A stretch of DNA of 45,922 bases from contig NC_068983.1 of assembly GCF_001194135.2 (NCBI RefSeq), positions 118,483,073-118,528,994 of the forward strand, given 5' to 3'. Made by a program: the position numbers and the translations under genes. Source of the stretch: Octopus bimaculoides. Taxonomy: Eukaryota. The notes under the pieces are model-generated. The model saw only the letters and a program-made list of their open reading frames with translations, did not search any database and had not been told where the DNA came from. Positions 8,387-37,617 of this stretch are shown here, piece by piece (position 1 is the stretch's first letter; each line of letters starts with the position of its first letter).

Positions 8387-9196
8387 TTAAAATGCAAAAT
8401 TCGGTAAGCTCTTATCACGGGTAACTTCACCACCACAACTATCAACAGATGTCTGAAATCCATTTATTAGCAATTGTGAAGCAGATTTGCCAACAGCAGG
8501 GATTAATGCTTGTCCATTTTGGGTGCTAGATTTATTAGGGAGTGGATTTTCTATTTGTCTCTCAGAGACAGGTATAGAGTAGTGGTCTGGTTTAGGAACC
8601 TTGCTGTGAGAATACATTACCTTTGGGCTGATTTTACCAGAAGAAGAAGGCTTTTGCTCAGCAGGATCTTTTACAATCAAATCTTCTTCACTTATGTGGA
8701 GCTTAATATTATAGCTATCCTCACTGTCACTGGAAGAATGGTTGGAACTTGAGAGCATTGAAGTTGAAGAATGCTCATCATTATTAAAAGTGTCAGTTTC
8801 AAGAGGCCCATCACATTTCAAATGACTATCACAAGGCAAATTCTTATTCAAATTATGGTTACATCCTTCAACAGGAAGATTTGGTTGACTGTGGTTTGGT
8901 TCAGCATATATCACTTGAGTTTCAGGTAAAGCAATATCTAGACCATTGGAAAGAGTTTCTTTATCTGTAAGCTGAGTAGCAGAAGACACAGCAGATAAAC
9001 GGTGCCGTTTAGGAAGCTTTAATACACCATTCTGAGTGTCATTTACTCTTTCTTTTGGCAACTTGTTAGATGAGAAGCTCTGCATAAGTTTGGTATTCCC
9101 ATTTGGAATGCATCTTTCATTGTAGCTCACTGACGGTACCTCACTGAATGTACTCTCTTGGATATTATTCGTATAACATTCATCAGTTGTTTTCCT
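8387..9196 (-). CDS. Terminal coding exon, 269 aa Ser/Asn/Pro-rich cytoplasmic tail RKTTDECY...DKSLPNFAF*
   Basis: Longest clean ORF in the window (810 nt incl. TAA); acceptor ttttcctttttgcag|AGG in phase 0 matches the upstream donor; low-complexity composition. Confidence 0.9.
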   Translation of the reverse strand, partial: RKTTDECYTNNIQESTFSEVPSVSYNERCIPNGNTKLMQSFSSNKLPKERVNDTQNGVLKLPKRHRLSAVSSATQLTDKETLSNGLDIALPETQVIYAEPNHSQPNLPVEGCNHNLNKNLPCDSHLKCDGPLETDTFNNDEHSSTSMLSSSNHSSSDSEDSYNIKLHISEEDLIVKDPAEQKPSSSGKISPKVMYSHSKVPKPDHYSIPVSERQIENPLPNKSSTQNGQALIPAVGKSASQLLINGFQTSVDSCGGEVTRDKSLPNFAF

Positions 9197-9284
9197 CTGC
9201 AAAAAGGAAAAAAAAAATTTTTAGACCAAATTTAGCAAAATCTTTATATCATGATTAATTTTATGATTACATTTAACAAATATA

Positions 9285-9322
<38 letters not shown>

Positions 9323-9655
9323 GAGAAATATATATATTAAGATAAATATTAATGATTACTTTTTAAGTGACTCCTTTGTATAAGTGAGGTAGAAATATTA
9401 TTTGATTGCTGAGATATTGCAATGATCTTATTGAAGTTTCTTATTACCTTCTTAAAAAATTAGAGCCAAAAGATGAAAATTCAGCCACATTGAGTATTTA
9501 AATATATAAACATATTCTCACAATGGATTTTTTTCTTTATATTGTGTAATACTAAGACTTTCCTCACTTCTTTTTTAAACATTTGATCCAGTTTTTTTCT
9601 CTCTTTTAACATCTAAAACTGGAGTATTTTTGAAAAAAGTTGCTTGACAGTCTAT

Positions 9656-9962
9656 CATCATCATCATCATCATCATCGTTTAACGTCCGCTTTCCATGCT
9701 AGCATGGGTTGGACGATTTGACTGAGGACTGGTGAAACCGGATGGCAACACCAGGCTTCAATCTAATTTGGCAGAGTTTCTACAGCTGGATGCCCTTCCT
9801 AAGGCCAACCACTCAGAGAGTGTAGTGGGTGCTTTTACGTGTCACCCGCACGAAAACGGCCACGCTCGAAATGGTGTCTTTTATGTGCCACCTGCACAAG
9901 AGCCAGTCCAGAGGCACTGGCAACGATCTCGCTCGAAAACCCTACAAAGGCCAGTCTATGAT
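9656..9962 (-). mobile_element. RTE-LINE 3' tail copy (antisense)
   Basis: Starts (CAT)n-cgtttaacgtccgctttccatgctagcatgggttggacg, the reverse complement of the tail at 14100-14279 and 27700-27832. Confidence 0.85.
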
Positions 9963-12900
9963 GATCTATAAAGGTATTGCTTATCTCTTGCTTGTGTACC
10001 ATTTAGCAGATGATAGAAAAATGTCACTCTGGTTAGAAGGCAGGTCCACAACAACAAAAGTCTGGTACCTATACCTAGTAGCATAAACTAAAGCATTTAG
10101 AATCTAGTGTCTTGCTCAAGGTATGAACACACAATTCTTGAACTGATCTTCCAAGTAACATTTTGTCTTAAACCAATATACTAGATATGATGAAGAAAAT
10201 AAATTAAATAAATTAAAGGTTTGGTGTCACAATGCACGTAAAAAAGGACATTTATACAGTCTAAGTAAGTGACTCTCTTCTTAAGACTTTGAGTAATTAG
10301 AATAAGAATATTCTAATTGCTATAAATGTTCATTTCTTTTGACTATATTCAAAGCCTTATCTGTTTTATAGCACTGTAAACAGAATCTCATGATACACAT
10401 AAATTAAGTGAGACAGCATCAACCAAATATTAAAATCACATCATGGTTTCAGCTTGTCATATGACCTGTGAGAATATTATTTAGATAAGACACTAATGCG
10501 CAGTTTAATTTAGCTCTCTTTTACTCCTTTCAATCCAGGTTTAGAGGATATAATAAATGGTAAGATTCTTGACGTAGGTGTTCAATAAATGAGATACTCC
10601 TGATACCACTAAAATTCTTATTAAATGACACACCTAATGTCCAGTTAAGTACATTGGAGGTGGCTAAGGTGTTTAATCTTTAGTCATGAGGGTTAAAACA
10701 AATTGAAGAACTTCTGACTCTTCAAATGATAAAATTTAACAATTAAATTTTTTTGTTGCTCATTAAAATTTCCCAACAAAGTTCATCTGACTTTTCAAGG
10801 AATTTTATGTACTATTCTCTGAAAAATCCAATGAACTTTCAAGAAAAGAATTAGTTGAATAAGTTTTTTTGTTATAGAAAGAAATATCTTTTTGCACGTT
10901 CTGTAAAATGTAAAAAATAAACTAAACTGTAAAACAGAAACATCAACCAACAAGCTTTGCATTGTCTTCTTCTTTACTTTAACTTTATCTTTATATATGT
11001 AACTATCAATATATTGTCACCTTCATTATTAATATATTGCAGAAATATACTGAAATATTGTAAATGTAGACTTATAAGGATATATTATTCGTTTACTTTA
11101 TTGATTTGAACTCAGCTGTGAAAATTGTTTAATAAATCAAACTTTAGACCTTATAAACTATTCACATTTCATTCAAGATCATGAATTTCAAGTTTATCAA
11201 TATAAAGTGGAAAATATTGAACCAGTGATAGAAAAATTAAAGATGAGGAAGGAATAAGTGAGAAGACTTATTTGCTCATTTTCATTTCTATCAGATTTTA
11301 GATTCAACAAGAGTACATGTTCATGCAAAGATCAAGTTCATGCAAACATGCAGAGCATAGTGTTTGTTGCTTTTTTGAAACCAGCTAAACAACATGCAGT
11401 TATGTATTGGTTTACATATTAGAATACCATCTTAATCAGACCAGCTGAAAAGGTGTGTGTACACACACAAACAGGTTTGCTTAATATATCTGAAAAAGAA
11501 AGAAGTATTTTGGTAAATATATTTTATAATACTATTTATAAACCTTAAAGATGTATATTAACAAATATCAAATGATACTGAAATAAATGCATTGATAAGT
11601 GACTCAAGTAAAAGCAATATATATACGACACCATATGATAAATAATATCTAAAGATGACAAACAGCAACAACATCAAAAACATGGGTGGGATTTATAAGA
11701 AAAGAAATAACAAAATGAAACAATTACATGGAAAGCAGTCTACAATTTGGAACATTTTTCTTATTAATATATTTCATAAAAGAATAACCCAACAACAAAG
11801 ATACATTGATTAAAAATAATAAAGCAGAAAACAAATGATAGATGATGTAATTTATAACTGTTTTTGTCATTGACAACTGCATTAGTTGTTTAGGTTACAT
11901 GAATCTAAATGTAGGTGTACTGGGTATGTAGTACAATGACATAGTCTAAACAATATTTTAGGAATTAATTTTTATAGACGGAAAAGCTATTACATACAAA
12001 GTTAGGGACTGGAATACTTATAGAATGTCTCTTGAAAGCAGCATTGCACTGGGGCCTTTGTAAAAGACAACTCGTGCTGGTTTGATACACACCCCACCAC
12101 AATAAGCATTAAGAGTTCTGTATAATTCACAAGTGCTTTGTTAGCATGTAGTTCTGAGTTCAAATTCTTCTATGGAGAATGTAGACAGATATTTCTAGAA
12201 ATACAACCCTGACAAACTGGGAAGTTGTGACAATCATGTCAGACACAAGAAGCATTAGTGCTGCAACAAAAATAATATGGCTCCCATTAGATCTGAAAAC
12301 TGAGATGAGGATTTAGTTTTCTTGATTTCCTCTGCTGCTATTCACAACAATGGTATAAGGCCAGAACTTTGGAGGAACGGGGTTGGTCAATTAAATCAGT
12401 TCCAATACTTAACTGGTACTTTGTAGGGCTGGTGCTAGGAAGTGCAGGGCCCAATTAGAGAATTTTCAGTGGGATCCTCTACTCTACAAAAGCAAAGATT
12501 GATGTTTTATGCTTTGTGTAGTATGCCAATCCCAGCTGAAAAGAGTTGAGGGCTTGAGGCTCTACCATTAGTCACAATGATATACTAATTGAAAGCTCAT
12601 ATGAAAGTTTTTAATGTTTTATTACAAGAAGTCAAACCTGTATACGGAAACTTCTCTTGGTGCAAGGCCAAATTTGAACAAATCTGTCTAATTGGCTTAA
12701 AATCAGGCCAGGTACTTTGTTTTATCAATCTTAGAAAGTTGAATGGCAAAGTTGACCTTGGTAGAATTTGAATTCAGAAAATAAAGAGCCATAACCAAAT
12801 ATTATAAAGCATTTTGTCTGACACTCTAATGATTCTGTAAATCTCTCTGCTGACATTTGCAATAATAACAAGAATAATGATCTGACAGTACCCAAGCATG

Positions 12901-13039
12901 GTCCCAGCCAGTAGGCTGTCAACAGTACTTCTGACAATTGTATAAGCCTACAAATTTAGGGAAGAGGTAAAATCACCATTGATTTCATCCAATTTCAGAT
13001 TTCAAGTTACTTATCAAGTCAAATTTATGGAAAGTCTTT

Positions 13040-14279
13040 TTTGTAAACAGAATGGTAGAGTATTCTGTGTGGTGACAAAGGGCTTCTCGCTCAGAGTAAA
13101 AGGTAGACTGTATGACACATGTATGTGAACAGCCATGCTACATGGCAGTGAAATATGGGCCGTGATTGCTGAGGACATGTGTAAGTTTGCAAGGAATGAA
13201 GCCAGTATGCTCCACTAGATATGTAATGTCAGTGTGCATACATGACAGAGTGTAAGCACCCTGAGAGAAAAGTTGGATTTAAGAAGCATCAGATGTAGTG
13301 TGCAAGAGAGACGATTGCGCTGGTATGGTCATGTGTTGCAAATGAATGAGGACAGCTGTGTGAAAAAGTGTAACACCCTAGCAGTTGAGGGAACCTGTGG
13401 AAGAGGTAGATCCAGGAACATCTGGGATGAGGTGGTGAAGTACGACCTTCGAACATTAGGCCTTAGTGAGGCAATGACTAGTGACCAGGACCTTTGGAGA
13501 TATGCTGTGCTTGAAAAGACCCGAAAAACCAAGTGAGACTGTAGCCCATGGCCTATGCCAGTGGGTGTAACCAGCCCATTTATGAATACCCCTCATTCAT
13601 TGGACAATAAACCTTGCTTGTGAAGACCTACTGAGGCAAGTGAAATCAAAATCAAAATTGCTGACCTGGCCAACGACAGTACTGCCTGATTGGCACTCGT
13701 ACCAGTGGAATGTTAAAAGAATATCCGAACATGGGGTGTAATTGGCCCACTTATGAGTATCCCTCATTCATTGGACAATGAACTTTGCTTACAAAGACCT
13801 ATTGAGGCAAGTGTAAACAAATCAAAATCACTGACATGGCCAATGATAGTACCGCCTGATTGGCACTCGTGCCAGTGGAACGTTAAAAGAAGCATATCCG
13901 AGCGTGATTGTTGCCAGGGCCACGGATTGGCTCCTGTGCCAGTGACACGTGAAAAGTATCATTCGAGCGTGATTGTTGCCAGTGGCGCCTTACCAGCACA
14001 TGTGCTGGTGGCACGTGAAAAACTACATTCAAGCGTGGTTGTTGCCAGTGCCGCCAGACTGGCTCTTGTGCAGGTAGCATGTAAAAACACCTTTTGAGCG
14101 TGTCATTACCAGAACCACCTGACTGGCCACCTTCAGAGTGGTTGGCGTTAGGAAGGGCATCCAGCTGTAGAAACCTTGCCAGGTCAGATTGAGCCTGGTG
14201 CAGCCTCTGGCTCACCAGTCCTCAGTCAAACCATCCAACCCATGCCAGTATGGATAGCGGGCGTTAAATGATGATGATT
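13040..14279 (+). mobile_element. 5'-truncated RTE-clade LINE: ORF C-terminus plus repeat-containing 3' UTR and (GAT)n tail
   Basis: Translation GFSLRVKGRLY...RRLRWYGHV...GRGRSRNIWDEVVK..DLWR with in-frame stops; 3' end ...gttaaatgatgatgat. Confidence 0.88.
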
Positions 14280-14588
14280 TTATGAGAAAACAATCTCGAC
14301 AAAGCTTTCCAACTGAGACCATGAACAGTAACAGCCAAGATAGCAATTATCCCCAATTTTTTTTTAAATGTGGGATCTTGAAATGTGAGTTAATGTTTGT
14401 TAGGTGTCTCCTTTGCAGACTTTAGTAAGGACTGTTGCAATATAGTATTAAGTAGATTTTTGAAATACATAAGTAAAATCTGAAAGCAAATTTGAGTGAT
14501 GGTACCATTTTGTATTACTTACTCCTCTATGTAGGAAAGGTTTTATACCGACAACATGTGAGGCAAACAATATCAAATTTATCCGTAC

Positions 14589-14718
14589 CAATGATGATAA
14601 ATATAGATCAGGTTGGGTAAAGTCATCAGAAGGAATATGACAGTATGTCTCCCCCTTGGAACTGGCCTGAATAAAACTACCATATTCAGATGGCAAGTTG
14701 CTTTTCCTTCGATTATTT
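14589..14718 (-). CDS. First cytoplasmic exon: NNRRKSNLPSEYGSFIQASSKGETYCHIPSDDFTQPDLYLSSL
   Basis: Acceptor (t)n-cag|A and donor TTG|gtacgg; 130 nt, phase 2 to phase 0; basic stop-transfer NNRRK directly after the TM; overlaps ORF-track 14448..14696. Confidence 0.88.
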
Positions 14719-15520
14719 CTGAAAAAAAAAAAAAACCAGTGTATTAAGAAAGATTAGAGGAAACAGTATAGAAGAATTAAAAATAAAAGGGAAAAAAGAT
14801 GTACAAATCTAAAAAGTAGAATTGGTGCTGTTAGACAAAATGTAACAATGGAACCTAACTAATAAAAAAAATGTATGAAGTGAACAATAACAACTAGAAT
14901 ATCTAAAATTGGAAATGGATATCTATATAAAGTTTATAATTTCCATCTGAGGCAATTTTTCTCAAGCAAAAAAGACAAAACTATTAGAAATAATTAAAAT
15001 ATAAATGGCTACTCTTTGTGCAAGAAGACACAAAACTTGTCTAGATATTTATATTTAGTTTTTGACTTGGCAACCAGAAGTTTAGAAAATGGTTAAGGAT
15101 AAGATAGGCAAGGAAGATTGATTCAATCATTGTAGTGTCATATAATTCCTTAGAATTTATTACTGTGAACTGAATAGTCATGAAGCTTAAAATCTTTAGG
15201 AGAAAGGAAAATGGGATGTTGTTATGTTTTCCAATCCAGCTAGGTACCAAAACTAGTTCACCAATAATTTGCTGTCAAACTACAGTATTGTAAATTTGCA
15301 TATTGGTTTCTTCAGACAAACCATAAAGGCCTTATAATTTTTGGAAGTATTAACATTCATGCATTTAAGGGCATAATAGCTTAAATGAAGTGAATTGTTC
15401 ACAATAGATTAGTCAGCTCAGTATTTTTCACCATATAAACATAATTTGCTGAAAACTATGTTTAATAATGCTTATAATCTAAATTCTTGTCAGTTTGGAA
15501 TGAAAATGAAGTGTGTTTAA

Positions 15521-15721
15521 CCCTTTAGCATTCAGATTACTCAGTCAAATGTAATACTTATTTAGTCACATTGTTTTGTATCTCATTGCTTTGAGATTTC
15601 AATATGTGACTATTTTTAGAATGACATTGTAGTGTTCAGTGTGAGAGGCAAGAAATGGCTAGTTTGAACATAAGATAGTAGAAAATTTGGGCTGGATATG
15701 ACTAGTTTAAATGCTGAAGGG
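15521..15721. mobile_element. piggyBac-type MITE, 201 bp
   Basis: TTAA|CCCTTTAGCATT ... AATGCTGAAGGG|TTAA: TIRs with one mismatch and TTAA target duplication. Confidence 0.8.
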
Positions 15722-17039
15722 TTAATAAATTTTTAGATTTATAAAGGGCAGAGATGGATAGATTTACTATAAAATATGCTATAATTTGTTCAAGAGAGCT
15801 ACAAGTAATTCCCTTTAGTTTCTCCTTGGATTTTGGTTATGTGGGTCCTAAGTAATAACATATATTTCTTCTAGACTTCACCATAACTGTCTAAAGATTT
15901 TCAGGAATCCAAATAGTTATTTTGTTACAATATTCTGATATTGTTGCTGAGTAGCAGAAACCATTTTAACCATTTGTGATAAAATAAAACTACAAGTGGT
16001 ACCCAACAGAAGTAACCTGACAAAGAAATAATGTATGCTGAATATTTAATTAATTTTACTGAGTAAGAAATTAGAATTTCTGTACAAATTTAGTGAAATA
16101 ATTTCAACACATTATTTGGATAATTACACTACACCACAGTTTGAGTGCAGCTAAAAACATGTTCTTAGCCATTCATGTTTCTATGTCATGAATCATTGTA
16201 GGGGGTCATTCAAAGTTTGTGATAAACTGAAATTGGTGATGGGGGGGGGGGGGCAATTATGTCCAACATTATGATATTTCAGTCAGATGTGGTTTAGGAC
16301 CAAAGTTAGGTTTAAATTAAAAAAATTCATATATTTAAATATAGCAATATTACTCTGTTCCGTTATATATTTCATATCCTATTCTTGTGAGCATTAGCAT
16401 CATTGGCTACAAATTTCCAATGAGTTAATCACTGCTTCACTGCATTTCTAATAATGAGAATGGCAAGGAAATAAAATGTGTATGTGTGTACATCACACAT
16501 GCCTGTGATATGAAACAGTGCTATTTTGTAGATTTCTTAGCTGTAAGGTACACAATAAATAGGTGTAGCATGGGCATGGCTGTCCATGAACTTAGTTGCC
16601 TTCTCCACTGCTGTTACTCTCTGAGATCCATTAGTATTGTGGAAGTATACTTGGGCATGAGTTGACTTCCACTACATGGAAGCATGTTCATATCTATATA
16701 TATTATGTGATTCTTCATTGTCTCTGCTCTGACTGCTAAATCCACCTTATGAAGTATAAGTCAACCTGAGACTATAGTAGAAGATAACTGTCCAAGATTG
16801 TGAGCAGTGGATTTAAACCTGGGAACTACACAGCCGTGTCTGCTTTTGTCTTGATATTCATCATAAATAATCTATTCAGTTTACTACTTTACATCATCAT
16901 CATCACCCTCATCATGTAACGTCTGTTTTCTATGCTGGTATTAGTTACATAATATCATGTTCTCTGTGGGATGAAGTTTGACACGTCATCTAAAATGCAG
17001 ATATCTTCACATAAAGTAGGATTCTGTATAACTTATAAA

Positions 17040-17820
17040 GTTTTGTCTTATTTTAAAGAGCGCCAGTGTTAATAATCAGTTTCAAACGAATATATGATCA
17101 ATACTCTCCGTATATGGGTACGTACAGAACCGGACGGTTCTGTTAGCTTCTTACGTCTCCAAGGTCAACTTCGACTTTCCTACTTTCAAAATCGATAAAA
17201 TATACCAGTTATTTACTGAAGTCGATTTAATCCACTGCCGTCTGTACGAAGATGCAATAAGCTATCATGGTACAGTAAAACTTGAATTTCCTGTTCAAAC
17301 GTAGGACCCTAACAACAGGTAAAATGACACACCTAGTGGGATACAGAACCGTCATATCAATATTAATTATATTAACAATATATTACTGTCATTATAACTG
17401 AATAAATAAAAAAAAACTAAACTAATCTTGAATTTAGTACTGATAAAACGATATACTATAAACTATGTTCAAATTGGTTTTAATTCAAGCGAGATAGCAG
17501 TAATTCATTTCGCTTTCTTTGACTAGCTTTCAAAACCAATAAAAAGTTAGTGAATGTTTTCTCATTTCTGTAAAAGTTATCTCCCGTGGATAACATTATT
17601 TCACATCTAATACTTGTTTTGAGTGAAGGAACATTACGGCCGTGTTTTGGTTCCGTTTTAGTTAAGGACTTTTTAAGGCTCAAATCGTCACTGTCCTTCA
17701 GAGAAGCACAAACATAACGCGAAGCAAATTACTTGATAAGATAATTAGTTATCTAGTGTCTTATTAAAGAATTTCGAGCATTTGTAAGATTATTGATTTT
17801 TATGAAACGGAATAAAGGAT
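17040..17820. promoter_or_regulatory. CpG-retaining intronic patch, candidate internal promoter or first exon(s)
   Basis: About 25 CpG in ~780 bp by eye versus a handful in the preceding 2 kb; strong minus donor GGAGAC|gtaaga (17155/17154) and plus donor CAACAG|gtaaaa (17318/17319); no match to the repeat families seen elsewhere in the window. Confidence 0.45.
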
Positions 17821-20431: not shown

Positions 20432-20497
<66 letters not shown>

Positions 20498-20501
<4 letters not shown>

Positions 20502-20755
20502 TAGTATATTGCCACTTAAGTGTGGCTGACCCCTAGGGGTGGATGTTACTGTTGCTTTTAGCCCCAGGAGGACATCTCCTCCAGCTGGCTTATCGACACA
20601 CGACTGTGTCCTGTTTGCCAAGGGAAGTTATCCCTCTCACCTCGATCTGCAGCACGTCGATAAGCCAGCTGGAGGAGATGTCCTCCTGGGGCTAAAAGCA
20701 ACAGTAACATCCACCCCTAGGGGTCAGCCACACTTAAGTGGCAATATACTACACT
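20498..20755. repeat. Foldback element with perfect 100-bp inverted arms and 58-bp spacer
   Basis: 20498-20597 is the exact reverse complement of 20656-20755 as read by eye. Confidence 0.92.
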
Positions 20756-20801
20756 TTATCGTGCAGTTACTGTTAATACTTCATTTAGAGAATTAACATT
20801 G

Positions 20802-20837
<36 letters not shown>

Positions 20838-20840
<3 letters not shown>

Positions 20841-21185
20841 TAAGGCACATAGCTCAGTGGTTAGGGCGTCTGACTTACAATCGTGAAGTTGTAAGTTTGA
20901 TTCCTAGAATGGGCTGTATATTGTGTTCCTGAGCAGGACACTTTATTTCATGTTGCCCCCCAGTTCACTCAGCTGTAAAAATGTGTTGCAACATCACTGG
21001 TGCTAAACTGTATCAGCCTTTGTCTTTCTCTTGGACAACATCAATAGTGTGGAGATGGGAGACCAATATACATGGGTGACTGCTGGTCTTCCATAAACAA
21101 TCTTGCTCAGACTTGTGCCTTGGAGGGGAACTTCCTAGGTACAATCCCATGGTTATTCATGACTGAAAGGGGGTCTTTACTCTTT
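20838..21185 (+). mobile_element. tRNA-headed SINE with CORE-like segment; related antisense copy at ~5070-5320
   Basis: Head gctcagtggttagggcgtc...gtttgattcc followed by tgtgttcctgagcaggacacttta. Confidence 0.65.
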
Positions 21186-23586: not shown

Positions 23587-23695
23587 TTGAAGCATTTGCA
23601 CAGAAAATATATCAAGGCAATGGACAGTATTAAAGTAAAAATTGCCAGCAAAGTTCCTATAGCTATGACAGCACTTGTAAGGTAGTGGCATTGTC
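23587..23695 (-). CDS. Transmembrane exon: (G)QCHYLTSAVIAIGTLLAIFTLILSIALIYFLCKCF(K)
   Basis: Acceptor tgtttgactctgcag|GA and perfect donor TTCAA|gtaagt; 109 nt, phase 1 to phase 2; ~24-residue hydrophobic stretch followed by CKCFK. Confidence 0.92.
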
Positions 23696-25639
23696 CTGCA
23701 GAGTCAAACAAGGCATTAAACAGTGGTTTATAACATACATTACATTCTATACTAATTCATAATGAATTACAGCATCACATCAGTTTTAGAAGCCCTTGAA
23801 TGTTTTTGCTTAAAAAGTGAAAGGAAATTGTTAACAAATTACCTCAAAATTGTAAGGCTCTACTTGTAGAAATTAAAGACAAAAGAAATGATGTAATGAA
23901 AAAGCACAGGAAAGAAGAGATAAAAAAAAAGATGAAGTTTGTAGGTATTTCAATAAATGAGATAAATTTTCAGTATGAGGCTATAATGATTAATTGCATT
24001 GTCACATTGAAGTTTCTGCTTTTTATATACTTTTTTTTTTTGTCAGCTAAGGGTAGAACCATCCTATCCTATTTAGCTAGATATGTCAAGCAAAAAGGTA
24101 TTAAGAGGAAGTATTTTGATATACTGATGTAACAAAATTCTACTTATAGCCTGATTACCATTACTGAAAATTCCACAGAGAGAGAGAGAGAGAGAGAGAA
24201 AGCAATAAATGTAGATGGAAAGGGAGTTTGAAAAAATGAATTAAAAAACTGTTTTTCGTATGAAGGAAAAAATATAAAAAAAATAAGGAAAAAATGATAT
24301 TGTTTAATACACTTTTAACAGGGAAAGGAAATTATTTTGAAATAATGAAATTTTTTTTTTTGTGGGAGGGGAGTGTTTCAGCTGCTTTATAAATCAGAGC
24401 TTGAATTCATTCCATTAATGAAATATATTCCCCTATTCGCTTCCTAGACTGATGATTAGTAAATATTTACATCACAGTCATCGTTTTGATTTTTCTGGAG
24501 TCACCATTACTGAGTTCCTGCTGCATATTGTTCTTTGTCTTTTAATTTGAATAAGTTTCTGAAGCAATAATTACAAAGATTCAAAACGAGTTACAGCCAG
24601 CCAAAGACAAGGGAGAATACTCTGCCTGACAATTTTACTTGTTTGTAACACTAGTTGAACCAGATGAAATGCAACTACTGTCAAAATATTTGATTCAATA
24701 TGTAAATTTCCAATTTGTTTTTTTAAAAAAGAAGAAAGTTCCATTCTAACCCACATAGTTAAATGGATTATAAAAAAATAAGTATTATATGTATTTTGAA
24801 CCTTTCATTAGTTTCTGCTAATAATTTCTGATGCAATACCCGCAGTAATATTCTTACATTATCTACTTAATTCCTACTATTTTATGTTTGATGTTGTTGA
24901 TGTTATCTCCAGCTGTATTGCTATGATAGCAAACAACTTTAAAAAGAACTGTTCTGCTGTATCAAACACAAGATACCATAGCTTCTTGATCTTCTGCTAA
25001 ATAATAAAAACAACAAATGCATTCCAAAAAGTTTCTCTTGCTCTCAAGAGAGTAAACATTCTAAAACCATTTAGTCGCCTATATCATAGCTTCTGAAAAC
25101 AAAGATTGACATCTATTAATTATATATCTTTCAGGCGTATCTGCTGTGTCGGAGCTTTAGAACGCTTCAATACACTTTCCAGCGCCAACCAACCAGCCAA
25201 CCGACCAACCGACCAAACTAACCATCTACCAAACCATCCACCCAACCAACTAACACAGTGTGAGATTCAACCAACAGTGTTTACTATGACACCAATTCCA
25301 AGGATGTTATCCGCCCAACCATTAAGAACAATCTCTATATTTTGAAGTTCGTCTTCCTTGTAACTTAGTGAACTCTATATCCCATTCTCTAACATGCAGC
25401 ATCAATCATAGTTGTTGTTGTTTTGGAATATCTATTTCTCTAACCCACATTCATTTTTGCATCAACAACAACTCTTGTATGTTTTTCTGGCCTGAATTTT
25501 ATTTTTTTAATTTTTTTTTTTTTTTGTATTGCCACACAACCACAATCAGCATCTTCCTATTTGTTTTTGCATAATCACAATTATGCAGAAAAGGTTAACA
25601 ATATCCAAAAAATATACCAATGTAATAATGATTTCAAAT

Positions 25640-25826
25640 TTTGGCACAAGGCCAGCAATTCCAGGAGAGGGGCTAAGTTGATTACATTGACCCCACTGCT
25701 CAGCTGGTACTTATTTAACTGGCCCCGAAAGGATGAAAGGCAAAGTCAAATGCAGCAGAATTTGAATGTAAAGATGGATAGATAGCTGCTAAGCATTTTA
25801 TTGCCAGCTCACCAACTTAAACCTAT

Positions 25827-25874
<48 letters not shown>

Positions 25875-26098
25875 GTCCTTTTTACTATGGGCACAAGGCC
25901 TGAAAATTGTCGGGAGGGGACTAGTTGACTACATTGACCCTAGTGTTTCACTGGTACTTGGTTTATTGACCCTGAAAGAATGAAAGGCAAAGTCAACCTC
26001 AGTGGAATTTGAACTCAGAATGTGAAGATGGATGAAATGCTGCTAAGCATTTTGCCTGGTGTGCTAATGATTCTGCCAGCTCAACACCTTAAACCTAC

Positions 26099-26145
<47 letters not shown>

Positions 26146-26350
26146 TATCCTTCCTACTATAGGTACAAGGCCTGAAATTTGGTGGGAAAGGGTTAATCGA
26201 TTACATTGACCCTCAGTGCTCATCCCACTTATTCTATTGACCCCGAAAGGATGAAAGGCAAAGTTGACCTTGGCAGAATTTGAACTCAGAATGTAAAGAA
26301 TCAGAAGAAATACAACAAAGCATTTTCTCTGGTGCTCTAATGATTTTGTC
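25640..26350 (-). mobile_element. Three tandem copies of a third SINE family separated by (AAT)n; other fragments at 440-690, 1320-1440, 12350-12420, 12690-12790, 21350-21520
   Basis: Recurring core gaccccgaaaggatgaaaggcaaagttgacct...gaatttgaactcagaa. Confidence 0.8.
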
Positions 26351-27043
26351 AGTCTATCGTCTTGATGAGGATGATAGTAACTGAAAATTGCAAACTCTTC
26401 ATGCTTCCTTTTCATTAGAAAAATACTCACAAGAACATCAGTAGAAACCAGTCAAATGTTACAGGATATAATTTGACCACTAAGGAGAAAGAGAAGAGAC
26501 TTGAGGTTTCTCATTTAAGGTTTCTAAACATATGACTATGATGACAAATATGATGATGATGATGGTGAAAATGGAGAGGTTGACAATGTGAATGAGGAGG
26601 AGAATTAAAGAACAGTGAGGAGGGAAGGCAGAAGAAGAAGAATATCTAATGAAAGATCTAAACAGTTAATATTGCCTAAAAGAAATTGGTATACTGAAAT
26701 GTCAGATAGAAGCATGCATTAAAAAATCACAGAGGTGTTATGACTGAAATAAGTTGTAACAGTTAGGAGTGATGTGTGTGTGTGTGAATGTGAGTGTGTA
26801 GTACAATGTTTGCTTCCCAACTACATAGTTTTGAGTTCAGTCACACTTTGTGGTACTTGGGCCAATGTCTTCTACAATAGCCCCAATTTGACCAAAATTT
26901 GTGAGTGGATTTGATAGATGGAAACCAAAATAAACCCATTATGTGTATGCTTGTGCATAAGTGTATGTGTGTGTATATATATGTGTGTGTGTGTGTATAA
27001 ATGTATATATGTGTATATATGTACACATATATACACATATGTG

Positions 27044-27338
27044 CAGGGCCGGCCCTAGGCGAATCAAATTTTAGTATCAATATCCTTTGACTCTTCAACC
27101 CGTAGGGCAGACTCAAGTTTTATGTAAAATTCCATTACTTGATGAGAAGATTTTGCAAAAATTTTATATCATACAGAAAACCGAACATGGAATTTATTTG
27201 TTTCAGTTGTTCAAAGCATTTTGAAACTGAGTTAATTGATGTATCCAGTATTGCAAAATAAAAATTCATTTTGTAGCTTTGTTTACTTTCCTGGATAGGT
27301 TCATTTTCTCCTTCATATGAGAATTGTTGTTTCTTTCT
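27044..27338 (-). mobile_element. hAT-superfamily transposon relic (transposase fragment plus terminus)
   Basis: Minus peptide RKKQQFSYEGENEPIQ...KMNFYFAILDTSINSV..CFEQLKQINSMFGFLYDI resembles ZMYM1-like hAT transposases; GC-rich terminus CAGGGCCGGCCCTAGG at 27044; cut by an N-gap. Confidence 0.7.
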
Positions 27339-27481
27339 NNNNNNNNNNNNNNNNNNNNNNNNNNNNNNNNNNNNNNNNNNNNNNNNNNNNNNNNNNNNNN
27401 NNNNNNNNNNNNNNNNNNNNNNNNNNNNNNNNNNNNNNNNNNNNNNNNNNNNNNNNNNNNNNNNNNNNNNNNNNNNNNNNN

Positions 27482-27832
27482 ATACACCATTTTGAGCGTG
27501 GCCGTTGCCAGTACCGCCTGACTGGCCTTCGTAGGATTTTCGAGCAAGATCGTTGCCAGTGCCCCTGGACTGGCTCATGTGCGGGTGGCACATAAAATAC
27601 ACCATTTTGAGCGTGGCCGTTGCCAGTACCGCCTGACTGGCCTCCGTGCGGGTGACACGTAAAAGCACCCACTACACTCTCTGAGTGGTTGGCGTTAGGA
27701 AGGGCATCCAGCTGTAGAAACTCTGCCAAATCAGATTGGAGCCTGGTATAGCCATCTGGTTTCACCAGTCCTCAGTCAAATCGTCCAACCCATGCTAGCA
27801 TGGAAAGTGGACGTTAAATGATGATGATGATG
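27482..27832 (+). mobile_element. RTE-LINE 3' tail copy, little diverged
   Basis: ...gttggcgttaggaagggcatccagctgtagaaac...gttaaatgatgatgatg; near-identical to the reverse complement of the 9656-9962 copy. Confidence 0.85.
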
Positions 27833-28019
27833 ATATATATACACACATATATATAGTGAATCAGGGTACGAGGAATAGGTAAACCAACCAATTGAAAGTA
27901 CATAAACTCATGTATGCAAACCAGCAGTAGAAGAACATATTGATACCCGTTTGGATTATGTATTCCTATTAACCAAATATTTTGAAAATTTTGGAAACCT
28001 GACTATACATATATATATA

Positions 28020-28787
28020 TTGGGTCATCCCATAAATAATGCATGATTTTTATACATCTTCTATATTTCAAAATTAAGATAAACCAAGTTCTTTTTTCAT
28101 CTAAAATATACTCTCCTTCATTTTCTACAATGCTCTTCTATCTATCTGGTAGACATTCACTTGTCCGTGACGAAAATTACTCCTCCAGTACTGTTCTGAC
28201 CTCGTCTAGGGAATTCACACTTTTTCCATCCAAATGATTTTGAAGACTTCAGAATAAATGATAATCAGATGGGGCAATGTCTGGTGAATATGGTGGGTGG
28301 GGCATTGTTTCTATTGAAACTGCTCCAGCCTTTGGAATGTCATCTTCACTGTATGTAGTCAATCATCATCCTGATGGAAGATCCCCTTTCGTCTTGAAAC
28401 CAAAGATGGTTGTTTTTCTTCAAGTGCTGACTAAATCCGCTCAGTCTGCTTGCAGTAGATCTCCTTTGTTATCATTTGGTTTGGTTTTAAAAGTCCAAAT
28501 TGGACTAAACCTTTCATATCCCACCAAACAGATAACAACACCTTATGTGGGTGAAGACCTTCTTTAGCCTGGAGTGCTGCTGTTTCTCCTTTCTCTACCC
28601 ACTGTCATCAGAGCACACATTCACTCTCTGCATGTGATTAGACTCAAGAAAATTTGTGAAGAACTCATTGCTGACTTTTCAAATGGCATGCAGGTGTCAA
28701 TGATTGGTTGAATGACCAAATCCAAGCTTCTCTGCAAGTTCCTCAACAGTTACAATGGAATTTTATTCCACCAGAGTTTGCAATAAA
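28020..28787 (-). mobile_element. Decayed mariner element (3' part with TIR)
   Basis: Minus translation MPHPPYSPDIAPSDYHLF*SLQNHLDGK (mariner YSPDxAPxD motif) with stops; TA followed by terminus TTGGGTCATCCCATAAATAATGC at 28020. Confidence 0.85.
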
Positions 28788-28874
28788 CACTCATAATGCC
28801 CGGCCTGGGAATCGAAACCGCGATCCTATGACCGCGAGTCCGCTGCCTTAACCACTGGGCCATTGCGCCTCCAC
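28788..28874 (-). mobile_element. Head-only copy of the same tRNA-derived SINE
   Basis: Reverse complement reads GTGGAGGCGCAATGGCCCAGTGGTTAAGGCAGCGGACTCGCGG...GTTTCGATTCCCAGG; truncated where it meets the mariner relic. Confidence 0.8.
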
Positions 28875-28901
28875 ATACATACATAAACATGCACACATAT
28901 G

Positions 28902-28936
<35 letters not shown>

Positions 28937-29459
28937 ACCTATGCATATATACATATATGTAAGTGTACTTATATTCTTTTTTTAAGTGTTGTACTTATTC
29001 TATCAGTCTCTTATGCTAAACAGCTAAGTTATGGGAATGTAAACAAAGCAACATTGTTAGTCAAGTGATAGTAGTAAGACAAACACTAAGACACACACAC
29101 ACACACTATTTTATTATTTATTAAAGCCCCCCCCCCCNNNNNNNNNNNNNNNNNNNNNNNNNNNNNNNNNNNNNNNNNNNNNNNNNNNNNNNNNNNNNNN
29201 NNNNNNNNNNNNNNNNNNNNNNNNNNNNNNNNNNNNNNNNNNNNNNNNNNNNNNNNNNNNNNNNNNNNNNNNNNNNNNNNNNNNNNNNNNNNNNNNNNNN
29301 NNNNNNNNNNNNNNNNNNNNNNNNNNNNNNNNNNNNNNNNNNNNNNNNNNNNNNNNNNNNNNNNNNNNNNNNNNNNNNNNNNNNNNNNNNNNNNNNNNNN
29401 NNNNNNNNNNNNNNNNNNNNNNNNNNNNNNNNNNNNNNNNNNNNNNNNNNNNNNNNNNN

Positions 29460-29690
29460 CTTTCACCACAACTTTCTCTCACTCTTACTTCCTGTTTCTG
29501 TTGTGCCCGTAATTCAAAGGGTCAGCCTTGTCACACTGTGTCACGCTGAATATCCCCGAGAACTACGTTAAGGGTACACGTGTCTGTGGAGTGCTCGGCC
29601 ACTTGCACGTTAATTTTACGAGCAGGCTGTTCCGTTTATCGGATCAACTGGAACCCTCGACGTCGTAAGCGACGGAGTACCAACAACAGT
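29460..29690 (+). mobile_element. 3' body of the same tRNA-derived SINE, after a gap
   Basis: Near-identical to 41038-41260 (tttcaccacaacttt...gaaccctcgacgtcgtaagc). Confidence 0.8.
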
Positions 29691-30937
29691 ATTTGAGTAC
29701 TATTTTTCTCACCTTGCACATATATGCTTACTTGTGTGATTGAGTGAGTGAGTGAGTGTGTGTGTGCGTGAGAAAGAGAGAGATAGAGATAGAGAGAGAG
29801 AGAGGGGGAAGGCTTTTTTCAGTTTTTGCCTACCAAATCCATGGCTTGGGACTATAGTAGAAGACAATTTTTGCATGTGTGTGTGTGTGTGTGTGCACAT
29901 GTGCATACATGTCATCATTGTTCGAATGCTCCTTTCTCTATGCTTGCATAGTTAAGTTGAAATTTGTTTTAGCAGGTCTTCTACAGCCTGTTGGGTTTCA
30001 CTATTTTCAACTCCTACCTGTTTCCAAGCAAGTTGAAAATTCCTCTTGATCTTCAAAGAACAAACATGTTTCTACAACAGATTGGATTTCAAACAAATGA
30101 TACCATTTGTTTGAAATCATGATTTTACTTACAGTCACCATGCAAGTTTCAAGCATGAAATGCAGACATTAAATTATGACGATGACAGTGCATGAATGGC
30201 TNNNNNNNNNNNNNNNNNNNNNNNNNNNNNNNNNNNNNNNNNNNNNNNNNNNNNNNNNNNNNNNNNNNNNNNNNNNNNNNNNNNNNNNNNNNNNNNNNNN
30301 NNNNNNNNNNNNNNNNNNNNNNNNNNNNNNNNNNNNNNNNNNNNNNNNNNNNNNNNNNNNNNNNNNNNNNNNNNNNNNNNNNNNNNNNNNNNNNNNNNNN
30401 NNNNNNNNNNNNNNNNNNNNNNNNNNNNNNNNNNNNNNNNNNNNNNNNNNNNNNNNNNNNNNNNNNNNNNNNNNNNNNNNNNNNNNNNNNNNNNNNNNNN
30501 NNNNNNNNNNNNNNNNNNNNNNNNNNNNNNNNNNNNNNNNNNNNNNNNNNNNNNNNNNNNNNNNNNNNNNNNNNNNNNNNNNNNNNNNNNNNNNNNNNNN
30601 NNNNNNNNNNNNNNNNNNNNNNNNNNNNNNNNNNNNNNNNNNNNNNNNNNNNNNNNNNNNNNNNNNNNNNNNNNNNNGTATCATCTTTTATCTTTTACTT
30701 GTTTCAGTGATGGGAGGACGGCCTTGAAGAGTTTTAGTTGAACAAATCAACCTCAGCACTTATTTTTTTCTTTAAAACCTGATAATACTTCTATTGGTTT
30801 CTTTTGCTGAACCACTAAGTTATGGGGATGTAAAAAAAAAAGCAATACCAGTTGTCAAGTGGTGGTGGTGGACAACCACAAGCATAAAAATATACAGATA
30901 TATATGTATGTGTGTGTGTGTGTGTGTATTGCTTGTA

Positions 30938-30995
<58 letters not shown>

Positions 30996-31782
30996 AGCTT
31001 CTTTCAGTTACCATCAACCAAATCTACTCATGTGGCTTTTATTGGCCTGAAGCTACATACAGTAGAAGACACTCGCCCAAAGTGCCATGCAGTGGGACTG
31101 AACCTGGAATCAAAGCTTCTTACTATAACAGCCACACCTGCATCAATATGTGTAAATTATATAACTGTCTATCTATCTATGTGTGTGTGTGTGTACATAC
31201 AGAAAGGGGAGAGAACTGAAGGCAAATCAGCCATTTATCAATCCCCTTTCCCTGTCATACCTTCAACTGCATCTCCAATCATGTTCCATTCCCTAACATT
31301 CTCCTCTTACACTCTAATGAACTTATTCACCTACCCTTCTTGATTCTTTGTCTGTATCTTCTTTTATACTCACCTTCTTGTATCTTGAAAGTATGCTCTG
31401 ACACACTGTTGCCACCACCACTGTCTTCTTACCAGTTACTCCTACCAATCCTTATATAATGTAGGGTAGCCATGTATCTCTTCTATAACAAGACACCTAT
31501 GCCTGACCCTCTGCCATACATTATGATAGAGAGTCAGGCACCTCCCAACACCTAGCATGAAGTCACCACCATCTCTGTTACAATCCCACTCAGTGAATGG
31601 GCTTTTTTTTCTTTGTCTTGCAAGAAGTGCCAAGCACACCCTGTAAAGTGCTTGGCCTAAAAAAAAGGGCACAAGGAAGGGTAACACTAAGCCAGATTGG
31701 AGCTTAACACAATCCTCTGGCTTGTTGGATCCTGTCAAACTGTCTAACACATCTCAGCATGGAAGAGAGACATTAAATAATG

Positions 31783-31829
<47 letters not shown>

Positions 31830-32862
31830 TCAGTTGTTGGTATTTTAATGTTCAGGATGCTGGGAAAGAATCAAGTTCACCTGGGTGATGCCAAACAAAG
31901 TGGGTCACTCAGAATCTTGTCCTACCTAAGTTTAAAGTCACTTGATGAAAGTGGATCTTTTTTTCTATGCTTTCATGATGTAACTGATCTATTCAACAAT
32001 ATAGAAATGCTGCTGAAACAGCTGTTTTGAACCTCTAAAATCCATTTGTGTTTTTATTTTATATAAGTATAAATATTTAGTTGCTATGTACGTTGCACCA
32101 TTGCAGTTATCTGGAACTCAGAATAGGATGTTCCAAGTACATCTGGATACCTAACTGCATTTGATCATAGATATTATATCTCTTCAACAGAGTGCAATAA
32201 AATGTTCCCTTGACGATCCATGGCACTTAAGCATTCAAATACACATCTAACATCTAGTGCTGAGTTCCAAATAACTGCAATGATGAAATGCATGTAGCAA
32301 CTATATATTTTATATTGGTGTGTATCTTAATTTTCAACTACATAATCTCTGTGTATCATAACTAGTAACACTAGTAAGTTCTGTGGTTGAATTACCACTA
32401 TAAGAAGCTGACTGGGTAATGATAATCTGCGTGGAGCTCTAACTCATACAGCAGTAGTCATACATCTGTTTGTACATACAAGATATCATCATCATCATTT
32501 AACATCTGTTTTCCATGCTGGCATGGGTTGGATGGTTCAACAGGAGCTGGTTAGCCAGAGTGCTCCACAACGGTCCATTTGTTTACTCTGGCATGGTTTC
32601 TACATCTAGATACTTTTCCTAATGCCAACCACCTTACAGAGCGGTTGACATTAGGAAGGGCTTAGGCAAACATTTATATGTAAGTGCATGTATGTTTGTG
32701 CTTTTTTACCTAAACATTTGTTGATCTGGAGTGGACATTTATTAGGACACACAAAACAGATGCACATATATAATTCATATGCGAATATGAATTAACTGAG
32801 ACACCATGTGAATGTGTGTGCAACTGTGTGTATGTGTGCGCAACTGTGTGTATGTGTGCACG

Positions 32863-32915
<53 letters not shown>

Positions 32916-34128
32916 ATGTGTGTGAACCTTATATCTAATTATATACACTGTTGATATATGAAATACATTAGCATCTGAACATAATATACCTGTTTAATAT
33001 TTCATTCTAATAGATTCTATTGATTGATACATCAAGTACATAATATATTCAGTTAAAAATATAATCTTCAGGTTACATCTTTTCTAAGAGAGAAAGTAAG
33101 AAATGACATACAAAAATACATGACAGACTTTAATGACATTAGACATAACTCTCAAAAATAAAACACTTTCAGTGCATTGTTTTCTTCTTTGCATGTGTGT
33201 GTGTTTGAATATCTTGATTTTGTTTTTCTAAATACATACTGTTGGAGAGAAAACTGCAAGTATTGGTTAAACATTATATTGTGTTTGAGCTATATCAATT
33301 TAAGACTATTATAAATAAATTTGAAACTGCAAAGAAAATAAGAAACACATGATAAAATTCTCTAAAATATTGTATAAATCTTACTGTTTAACTGATATGA
33401 GAGAGAGAGAGAGAGAGAGGGAGAGAGAATAGGGTGCGGTTGGGGGAAAATAGTGATAGAAACAAGTACCAAATGATTTGGAAGAAAATCAGAGCAATTT
33501 AATATTAAAGAGATAGAACTTGATAATTTATAAAGCATTTTCCAGATCATATAAAAGAAAGAAAAAAGAAACAGAAAGCTTGAAGAGATAGATGCCAGCT
33601 GTATTAGTATTATGGTTTGAGAGCAGGGCATAGATGGATTCAGCGAAGTATATACAAAAGTGGAATAGAAGAACTATAAACTACTGGTGGTGAAAATGGA
33701 TAATATTTTGACAATGCTATATCAGTTGCTAGGAGGGTGCAGAAGAAGAGAGTGGCAAGCCAACAGCTGTGAAGTATAAAAGAAGACCAAGTCAGTTGCC
33801 AATAAACTATACAGTTATGCTATACTCTGTACATGATACCGTTTCATAAAGGATGCACCAAGTATTGGCACCGATTTTCTAAACTTTCAAACAAGACAAA
33901 CAAGTATATTATGGGTATAAGAAGGTTTTTTTTTAATTTCTTTTTTTTTTATAGCATTATTTCTAATTAAGAGCAATTTTACACCAAGGAATCACAGGTT
34001 TCTTGGAAATAACCAATTTGTTTTAATTATAATACACTGCAAACATTATTGCTTCATACATATGTGTGTCATCATCATTATTGTTTAACGTCTGCTTTCT
34101 ATGCTGGCATGGGCGGGACTGCTTACAA

Positions 34129-34168
<40 letters not shown>

Positions 34169-35116
34169 ATTATATATATAATATATGTAAATATCGAACA
34201 ATGAGAATGAGTGTTTAACACTGCATTAGTGGACAAAGATTCTCTATTTGTGTACTAAGGCTACCATTGGTTTCATGTAAAGAAACCAATGGGGTTACAT
34301 AGGCCATAGAAACTGCAAAACTGGCCCGCATCAGTGTATATGATTTGAGAAGGAGCTTTATCTATGCTACAATTAAATGTTTGTATCTTTAAACATTTTG
34401 ATACTTATTCCATCAAAAATTAACACACACACATTGAAATGGTCATAGTTATAACTATAAGATTAATGAGAATTTGGGACCAGTAATCAACTGAAGGGAA
34501 TTTATGTAAAATTACAGCAACTGGTAGTTTGCACAGAATTATTGTTTATTAACCATTAAAACTGTTACCACATTACTAAGCATTAGCTGCAAGATCATGA
34601 CTGTCCAAATGATTATAAGTTGGTAAAATAATAAACTGTCAAATCTAAAGTAGTTAATTTCTGGAGAAAATAAGGGAGAATTTAAGAAATTTTACCATAA
34701 ATCCTTAGATTAGTCTTAAATAGTCTGAAGATTTGGTTTTTAATTTTTTTGAGGAATGAGAACATAGTACTAATTTGACTTAATTTACAAAATTTAAATG
34801 AGTGTCAACTATTATTAACTCTACAGAAAAAAAGCCAGATGGCTTGAATTGGTATATCAAATAAAATTCTTTGCAAATTTTTATCAATTACTAACATATT
34901 TTTAATAGCCCAGCAGTTGTAATAAGGAAATAATAAATGGCTTAGCATTTAATACATCTAAGGGGATTTAAATTTGATTGTTAAATAATATTGGCAACAA
35001 AATATGATAGATGATCATAGAATATTCTAGATAGGTGCATAAGTGATAGATGGAAAAAGAAAAGCAAAAAATAAAGAAAGAATGTGTTACATGCTTAAAA
35101 ATTAAAAAGTACATAC

Positions 35117-35184
35117 CTCTTACATCTTGAACTGTGTCCCCAAGCATAGTTTCACAGCGTTCCCCAGTGTAGTCTATGTGGCAC
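35117..35184 (-). CDS. Exon of EGF-family ligand-like gene: second half of EGF module plus stalk, (R)CHIDYTGERCETMLGDTVQDVR(G)
   Basis: Acceptor ...ccaattcttag|G and donor AGAG|gtatgt; 68 nt, phase 2 to phase 1; C-x8-C with YxGxRC motif typical of the C5-C6 loop of ErbB-ligand EGF domains; joins in frame to the TM exon. Confidence 0.88.
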
Positions 35185-35337
35185 CTAAGAATTGGTAATT
35201 AGCAGACAGCATTTGATTAACACAGTGTAAATTTAAATTGGAAACATGCAACAGCCAGGAGGGATGAAAATATCTGTTTGGCTGCACTAAAGACTATGTA
35301 GCAATAGTCTTTGATGTCATTTTCAGAAATAGTTTAA

Positions 35338-35864
35338 CCCTTTTGATGCTAACTTGTCCAAGACTGTCCACAATTCTTTGACACAAAATTTTTCTATAAA
35401 GTAATCTAAATTAAAATTTCTCATTAAAATTTCATGTTAATTTATGTTTCAATTAGCAGCTTAATAATTACTAAGATATTTTCATAAATTCACTATTATT
35501 TTCAAAATTAATTGAAATAAACAGGGTTCAACAGAGTGAAGGCACGTGTCTTAGTGGTTAGGGTATTTGGCTGATGATCATAAGTTCAATTCCTGGTGAC
35601 GTGTTGTATCCTTGAGCAAGACACTTTATTTCAGCAAGACACTTTATTTCAGCTGGCAAAAATGAGTAGTACCTGTATTTAAAAAGGGCCAGCCTTATCA
35701 CACTCTGTGTCATGCTGAATCTCTCTGAGAACTCTGTTAAGGGTACACAAGTCTGTGAAGTGCTCAGTCATGCATATTAATTTTATGAGCAGGCTGTTCC
35801 ATTGATTGAATCAACTGGAACCCAGTTGGAGTGCCAGTTCAACAGAGAACTGGTAACAAGAAGG
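35338..35864. mobile_element. piggyBac-type MITE interrupted by a SINE
   Basis: TTAA-CCCTTTTG at the left end and degenerate CAAGAAGG-TTAA at the right end. Confidence 0.55.
35537..35836 (+). mobile_element. Diverged tRNA-derived SINE with 11-bp TSD, nested in a piggyBac-type MITE
   Basis: Flanked by GTTCAACAGAG at 35526-35536 and 35837-35847. Confidence 0.75.
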
Positions 35865-36182: not shown

Positions 36183-36213
<31 letters not shown>

Positions 36214-36227
36214 CACCCGTGCATGTA

Positions 36228-37577: not shown

Positions 37578-37617
<40 letters not shown>

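Follow-up and report, generated by a model that had tools for sequence, protein, structure and literature searches.

We analyzed a stretch of 45,922 nucleotides (nt) of the Octopus bimaculoides genome (RefSeq assembly GCF_001194135.2, contig NC_068983.1, positions 118,483,073 to 118,528,994; hereafter the window), in which the 3′ end of the gene LOC106868416 lies on the minus strand. LOC106868416 is very probably the octopus orthologue of the bilaterian neuregulin-type ligands of EGFR/ErbB receptors, which combine an immunoglobulin (Ig) domain, an EGF domain and a transmembrane (TM) helix. A preliminary description of the window had proposed a cephalopod EGFR-ligand precursor of the neuregulin type, and this proposal is supported by matches to solved structures in the PDB, by an intron that separates EGF cysteines four and five (C4/C5), by the Ig-EGF-TM order of the full-length protein and by its collinearity with a vertebrate pro-NRG1; receptor binding would be expected from the family. 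All coordinates given below are positions in the window, which consists of AT-rich animal DNA with six runs of N.

Exon structure and gene identity

Four exons (E1 to E4, Table 1) were joined into a single reading frame. The preliminary description had claimed four minus-strand exons with canonical splice sites and phases running 2-1, 1-2, 2-0 and 0-stop, and the chain was reconstructed with AG/GT borders: E1 (phase 2 in, 1 out) runs from the final base of one codon to the opening base of another, E2 (1 in, 2 out) finishes two bases into a codon, E3 (2 in, 0 out) finishes at a codon boundary, and E4 (0 in) runs to the stop. The resulting peptide of 371 residues reads CHIDYTGERCETMLGDTVQDVRGQCHYLTS-AVIAIGTLLAIFTLILSIALIYFL-CKCFKNNRRKSNL...NFAF before the stop. 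E1 encodes the third loop of the EGF domain (C5-C6, CHIDYTGERC) and the start of the stalk (ETMLGDTVQDVR-G); from E2 come the last stalk residues (QCHYLTS), the TM helix AVIAIGTLLAIFTLILSIALIYFL and the beginning of the tail next to the membrane, which is Cys-rich and basic (CKCFK); the short form of E3 contributes the tail residues NNRRKSNLPSEYGSFIQASSKGETYCHIPSDDFTQPDLYLSSL; and E4 contributes the final 269 residues of the cytoplasmic tail (RKTTDECY...SLPNFAF).

Table 1. Positions of the LOC106868416 exons and of other features in the window.
Feature	Position	Length (nt)	Strand	Remarks
Exon E1	35117-35184	68	minus	acceptor ...TTCTTAG, donor GTATGT
Intron E1-E2	23696-35116	11,421	minus	runs of N at 27339-27481, 29138-29459 and 30202-30677
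Exon E2	23587-23695	109	minus	acceptor ...CTCTGCAG, donor GTAAGT
Exon E3, short form	14589-14718	130	minus	isoform X2; acceptor T14CAG, donor GTACGG
Alternative extension of E3	14523-14588	66	minus	in frame; isoforms X1 and X3; distal donor GTAAGT
Exon E3, long form	14523-14718		minus	short form plus extension
Exon E4	8387-9196	810	minus	acceptor ...TTTTTGCAG, stop TAA 8387-8389
Stalk Cys codon	23675-23677		minus	in GQCHYLTS
Tail motif R-x-R-L-x-A-V-S	8990-9016		minus	E4; octopus KRHRLSAVS
Tail motif LHISEEDL	8686-8709		minus	E4
C-terminal NFAF	8390-8401		minus	E4
Assembly gap	38284-38949	666		run of N
Interspersed repeat, copies	9663-9956, 13883-14215, 27520-27834, 36228-36341, 38950-39184			both orientations
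Inverted repeat	20494-20597 / 20656-20759	104		E2-E3 intron; 58-nt spacer
Transposase-like reading frames	3427-4068		plus	broken, overlapping
Open reading frame	13273-13536		plus	MDLRSIRCSVQERRLRWYGHVLQMNEDS...

Over its full length the joined peptide matches, at 100% identity, the last 371 of the 656 residues of O. bimaculoides RefSeq XP_014769147.1 (“uncharacterized protein LOC106868416 isoform X2”), a version-1 record labelled PREDICTED; the E1 product is identical to residues 286-308. Earlier the gene had been described as assembled from the four exons; these make up only its 3′ end, the whole gene (range of isoform X1) covering about 249.6 kb in assembly GCA_001194135.2. By tblastn, the last four coding exons are the only ones inside the window, and exons for the C1-C4 part of the EGF domain (PSEKQCEDQHYCLNKGECWYRLPPLDEKYCK), for the Ig domain and for the N-terminal parts were absent from it, the upstream exons having been sought in 35185-45922. 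The 666-N gap could in principle conceal an upstream exon.

Nor is the gene hidden, as had been thought, since the exact model is already in RefSeq and orthologues in sister species already carry the name pro-neuregulin-2. The O. vulgaris orthologue of the joined peptide (97% identity, 100% coverage) is named “pro-neuregulin-2, membrane-bound isoform isoform X2” by NCBI, as is, by the name pro-neuregulin-2, one isoform of the O. sinensis orthologue LOC115209589; the latter falls into the same 90%-identity cluster as XP_014769147.1, together with isoforms X1 (678 amino acids) and X3 (536 amino acids). The orthologue of Argonauta hians (646 amino acids, with Ig domains) is 63% identical to the joined peptide. 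For E4 the identity by tblastn was 98.5% in O. vulgaris and 65% in Argonauta. Exon junctions are the same in the O. vulgaris and A. hians orthologues, and agreement of this extent is far beyond chance.

A cuttlefish-like orthologue of 663 amino acids, whose 90%-identity cluster includes a protein of Acanthosepion pharaonis, occurs as one uninterrupted open reading frame (ORF) on contigs, 3.1-3.3 kb long, that were assembled from four sequencing runs. Against these contigs the four-exon peptide aligned as a single stretch over all three junctions (residues 1-279, E 2e-38). We read the contigs as spliced transcripts, because the octopus gene spans about 250 kb.

The E1-E2 intron contains 941 N among its 11,421 bases. 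All three of its gaps lie within the intron, no exon abuts any assembly gap, and the reading frame across the gaps is therefore not an issue. The three gaps are bordered by interspersed repeats with further copies in the window, a siting that is the usual cause of such gaps. We compared the E1/E2 junction in all isoforms seen in O. bimaculoides and O. sinensis and in the one model each of O. vulgaris and of A. hians: the Gly-Gln junction is conserved, with zero inserted residues (...VRG/QCHYLTS in the Octopus species, ...IKG/QFNKLTS in Argonauta). Order and orientation across the gaps agree with the independent assemblies behind the proteins of O. vulgaris, O. sinensis and A. hians. An extra alternative exon could lie inside a gap; none of the known isoforms requires one.

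The EGF domain

The full-length protein contains one EGF domain with six cysteines, of which C1-C4 (CEDQHYCLNKGECWYRLPPLDEKYC) are present in the RefSeq protein and encoded beyond the window. The preliminary description had named two features of vertebrate ErbB ligands, and both were recovered in this domain. The third loop (C5-x8-C6) keeps Y, G and R in the order aromatic-x-Gly-x-Arg-Cys, so that the YxGxRC loop is present as DYTGERC in E1. The C4/C5 intron is present as well, as in the ErbB-ligand family: a phase-2 intron upstream of E1 (acceptor at 35184) splits the Lys codon of C4-K-C5, and E1 starts with the third base of that codon. An intron at C4/C5 is a near-invariant feature of the EGF-ligand family (PMC11686035). 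Across nine orthologues the EGF cysteines, G270 and G292 are nearly invariant, and by eye in the same alignment the loop Arg is retained in eight of the nine, with His in Potamilus.

When the EGF domain was searched against the PDB with phmmer, ranks 1-22 were all ErbB ligands (E 3e-6 to 4e-3), among them epiregulin (3e-6), EGF, epigen, NRG1 (4e-4), Spitz and amphiregulin. The first Notch EGF followed at E 7e-3, and the ErbB ligands also outranked coagulation-factor EGF domains.

Within the stalk, the Octopus proteins have a seventh, apparently unpaired extracellular Cys (GQCHYLTS) at a place where Argonauta has GQFNKLTS.

Domain order and membrane anchor

The full-length protein comprises, in order, a signal peptide (in whose place isoform X3 has a short start without leader), an N-terminal domain of about 130 residues, an Ig domain, the EGF domain, a stalk, the TM helix and the tail. 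The Ig domain, encoded outside the window, was found at residues 161-251 of XP_014769147.1 by three Pfam families, all above the Pfam cut-off (Ig_3, 39.9 bits; V-set, 37.3 bits; I-set, 28.1 bits), and it directly precedes the EGF domain in all three O. bimaculoides isoforms and in the orthologues. The preliminary description had itself named an arrangement that would speak against a ligand, namely an EGF that is the last of many repeats in a non-ligand family; the arrangement is a different one, because the full-length protein holds one Ig domain and one EGF domain.

The N-terminal domain family NRG2_N (PF25518) was detected at E ≤ 10 in 7 of 10 aligned lophotrochozoan orthologues, the sub-threshold octopus match included. 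It scored above the cut-off in four of them (Gigantopelta, Ylistrum, Haliotis and Potamilus), and these four align with octopus residues 8-150.

A stalk of 20 residues separates C6 from the TM helix, which consists of 24 hydrophobic residues with basic residues after it. Its Kyte-Doolittle maximum over 19 residues was 2.72, compared with ≤ 0.76 elsewhere in the peptide, and AlphaFold2 called the segment helical with a predicted local distance difference test (pLDDT) score > 90. In a single-sequence AlphaFold2 model of the Ig-EGF-TM part (mean pLDDT 46.6, too low for comparing folds), the TM helix alone was confident. EGF folds would not in any case separate ligands from structural repeats. The only Pfam match of the 371-residue window peptide was a weak one to DUF4418 on the TM helix, which was treated as noise.

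Full-length homology to neuregulins

In an exhaustive HMMER search of 1.84 billion representative sequences, 79 matches were obtained at E ≤ 1e-3. The top full-length matches came from Gigantopelta, Patella (“pro-neuregulin-1”), Haliotis, Ylistrum (“pro-neuregulin-2-like”), Potamilus and the nemertean Tubulanus, and these lophotrochozoan proteins are collinear with the octopus protein from residue 8 to about 350. A vertebrate match, pro-neuregulin-1 of Oncorhynchus kisutch, was found at E 4.1e-15; by BLASTP it is 29% identical to the octopus protein over 268 collinear residues, which cover the end of the N-terminal domain, the Ig domain, the EGF domain and the TM helix.

The cytoplasmic tail

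The Ser-rich tail comprises about 320 residues, or about 340 with the alternative insert described below. It had been called a long neuregulin-like tail, and this holds for its length and position; sequence homology to the vertebrate neuregulin tail is not established, because an hhalign comparison of a nine-sequence lophotrochozoan tail alignment with the fish NRG1 tail gave a probability of 26%, confined to the basic juxtamembrane stretch, and the Neuregulin intracellular region (PF02158) went undetected. No Pfam family was found for the tail. The tail is still under constraint: two motifs encoded by E4, R-x-R-L-x-A-V-S and LHISEEDL, are conserved in cephalopods, gastropods, bivalves and the nemertean.

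The C-termini were compared by eye. Those of gastropods and the nemertean (...EDQDPIPI, ...DDQDAIPI, ...EDQGPIQI and ...ENQEAVPL) resemble the ...NQDPIAV of vertebrate NRG1, and cephalopod proteins end earlier, with NFAF or NFVF. A hydrophobic-x-hydrophobic C-terminus is common to the cephalopod, gastropod, nemertean and vertebrate NRG1 ends; it would fit a class II PDZ-binding motif.

Alternative splicing

E3 has a second donor that was missed in the preliminary description. The distal donor, GTAAGT, is stronger than the short-form donor, GTACGG, and its use adds 22 partly hydrophobic tail residues, VRINLILFASHVVGIKPFLHRG, after ...YLSSL; the same 22-residue insert is annotated in O. sinensis XP_036357499.1. 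At the other end of the protein, the N-terminus of isoform X3 (MILNENILQN..., encoded outside the window) replaces the signal peptide and the N-terminal domain and is leaderless, a parallel to leaderless vertebrate neuregulins and to C. elegans SISS-1. A second C5-C6 exon of the alpha/beta type, or a C1-C4 exon, was sought by regular expression in six frames and not found in the readable window, CHIDYTGERC being the sole motif of the C5-C6 type. A second copy of the C5-C6 exon could still sit inside a gap.

Comparison with known ligands

The octopus protein resembles vertebrate pro-NRG1 and pro-NRG2 in its optional signal peptide and N-terminal domain (its NRG2_N match being sub-threshold), single Ig and EGF domains, short stalk, TM helix and long tail, in having alternative N-termini that include one without a signal peptide, and in the C4/C5 intron. 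It differs from them in the undetectable PF02158 region, in the C-terminus (NFAF/NFVF in cephalopods versus ...NQDPIAV), and in having no alternative alpha/beta EGF exon in the readable window, such exons being a feature of NRG1 and NRG2 and not of the wider type. That type, defined as EGF plus I-set Ig plus TM, occurs in most bilaterians; one NRG-like ligand was counted in Crassostrea gigas and none in Lottia, with cephalopods unsampled (Barberan et al. 2016, PMC4914847).

Closer relatives are the neuregulin-like proteins of Patella vulgata (XP_050391907.1), Haliotis asinina (XP_067673078.1), Ylistrum balloti (XP_060065639.1), Gigantopelta aegis (XP_041364523.1) and Tubulanus polymorphus (XP_074648029.1). 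These share with the octopus protein the collinearity from signal peptide to TM helix and both tail motifs; overall identity is 20-24%, however, the cephalopod N-terminal domain is more diverged (NRG2_N being sub-threshold), and cephalopods are without the ...DQDPIPI-type ending.

Drosophila Vein is likewise an Ig plus EGF ligand of EGFR and has an N-terminal beta-barrel domain, to which one bivalve orthologue gave a weak match (Vein_beta-barrel, 17.7 bits). Vein is secreted, without a TM anchor or cytoplasmic tail, whereas the octopus protein has both, the TM helix being encoded by E2. SISS-1 and IGEG-2 of C. elegans share the Ig domain, the EGF domain, the single TM helix, the C4/C5 intron and a form without signal peptide; they are much shorter (SISS-1, 274 amino acids) and have no N-terminal domain or long tail. 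SISS-1 and IGEG-2 are Ig-EGF transmembrane EGFR ligands that are activated by shedding (PMC11686035, PMC12593006).

Evaluation of the assignment and of its alternatives

Several results weigh against the assignment of LOC106868416 to the neuregulin type. For NRG2_N the octopus score was 13.8 bits (E 0.07), the cut-off being 27. At E ≤ 10, PF02158 matched neither the window peptide nor the full-length protein nor any of 10 lophotrochozoan orthologues, compared with 440 bits in the fish pro-NRG1 used as a control. The Pfam EGF family (PF00008) was missing from the matches of the octopus protein even at E ≤ 10, and in the Argonauta orthologue it stayed sub-threshold (17.4 bits, cut-off 21.5). Among solved ligands the EGF domain alone is nearer to epiregulin and EGF than to NRG1, a ranking from which receptor specificity is not predictable. 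Finally, support for the junctions comes from RefSeq models, orthologous models and the transcript contigs of one relative.

What is shown is how the exons are arranged, in which order the domains follow and that the protein is homologous to ErbB ligands and neuregulins; the expected mode of action is taken over from the family. The protein would be synthesized as a type I membrane precursor with its EGF domain beside the membrane; the Ig-EGF ectodomain may be freed by cleavage of the stalk or presented to a neighbouring cell; the EGF domain would bind and activate an octopus EGFR/ErbB receptor; and the tail probably controls trafficking, shedding or a signal sent back into the cell that makes the ligand.

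A variant of this scheme, in which the precursor is of the neuregulin type and acts mainly while tethered, signalling to a touching cell and through its tail back into its own cell in place of acting as a soluble, shed ligand, appears unlikely. Vertebrate NRG1 type III works tethered. The tail of about 320 residues, with its two motifs conserved from cephalopods to a nemertean, and the 22-residue tail insert made by the alternative donor in two Octopus species would suit such a function, whereas the 20 residues between C6 and the TM helix are a typical shedding site, and the sequence holds nothing by which the tethered and shed modes could be told apart. Family reviews, as quoted in PMC12593006, have all EGF-family members undergo ectodomain shedding.

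We regard as very improbable a ligand of the Spitz/TGF-alpha type, with EGF and TM and no Ig domain. The part of the protein encoded in the window (EGF loop, TM helix and tail) fits that type as well as the neuregulin type, and epiregulin and EGF are the top scorers when the EGF domain is taken alone, but an Ig domain stands before the EGF domain in all three isoforms and in the orthologues, and the full-length similarity is to neuregulins. Least credible, and scarcely to be entertained, are a non-ligand adhesion or matrix membrane protein with an EGF module and, alternatively, a dead gene or annotation artefact. The sub-threshold Pfam EGF score speaks for these readings; against them stand the single EGF domain with its ligand-type intron and YxGxRC loop, the dominance of ErbB ligands among the solved-structure matches, a reading frame that is unbroken and conserved in four octopod species and further afield, and the contigs read as spliced transcripts in a relative. 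A neuregulin-type precursor remains the preferred reading of LOC106868416.

Other features of the window

An interspersed repeat with the translation ...DLAEFLQLDALPNANHSESVVG... is present in at least five copies in both orientations (Table 1), with arm identities of up to 96%; copies border the gap at 27339-27481 and the 666-N gap at 38284-38949. The two arms of the inverted repeat in the E2-E3 intron are 99% complementary, and the element could be hairpin-forming or similar to a miniature inverted-repeat transposable element. The broken, overlapping ORFs on the plus strand resemble the C-terminal part of a Tc1/mariner transposase by a single weak match to Sleeping Beauty (E 0.04), with none in Pfam. 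A further plus-strand ORF (13273-13536) had no Pfam match and looks like the end of a retrotransposon ORF. Apart from the gene, seven ORFs of the window were compared with Pfam, none with a meaningful match, and scans of the window for tRNAs and against Rfam found nothing.

Significance for cephalopod biology

LOC106868416 is a gene already known through its exact RefSeq model, through the names given to it in sister species and as a member of a described bilaterian class, and it is functionally uncharacterised. Because model and name are already in public annotation, little is added here as discovery; what is added is a verified exon map that covers ligand loop, membrane anchor and tail, including the alternative donor, and grounds for changing the RefSeq label from “uncharacterized protein” to “neuregulin-type EGFR ligand precursor”. 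A literature search by gene identifiers and for cephalopod neuregulin found no paper on LOC106868416 or on any cephalopod neuregulin, which makes the gene a ready candidate for studies of glia-axon signalling and of how octopus arms regenerate.

In discussing why the tip of a regenerating arm needs nerves to reach it, a cephalopod regeneration paper raises nerve-supplied NRG1, which is documented in salamanders and newts, and names no cephalopod gene (PMC10550383). We consider it a speculative and rather doubtful, though not negligible, prospect that LOC106868416 is the octopus counterpart of nerve-derived neuregulin; as such it might provide a shed or axon-presented signal for glial wrapping or for nerve-dependent regrowth of the arm, with a lophotrochozoan-specific tail (R-x-R-L-x-A-V-S, LHISEEDL and the 22-residue insert) adding a back-signalling function absent from vertebrate neuregulins. 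The idea of a nerve-supplied neuregulin in arm regeneration would become directly testable at LOC106868416.

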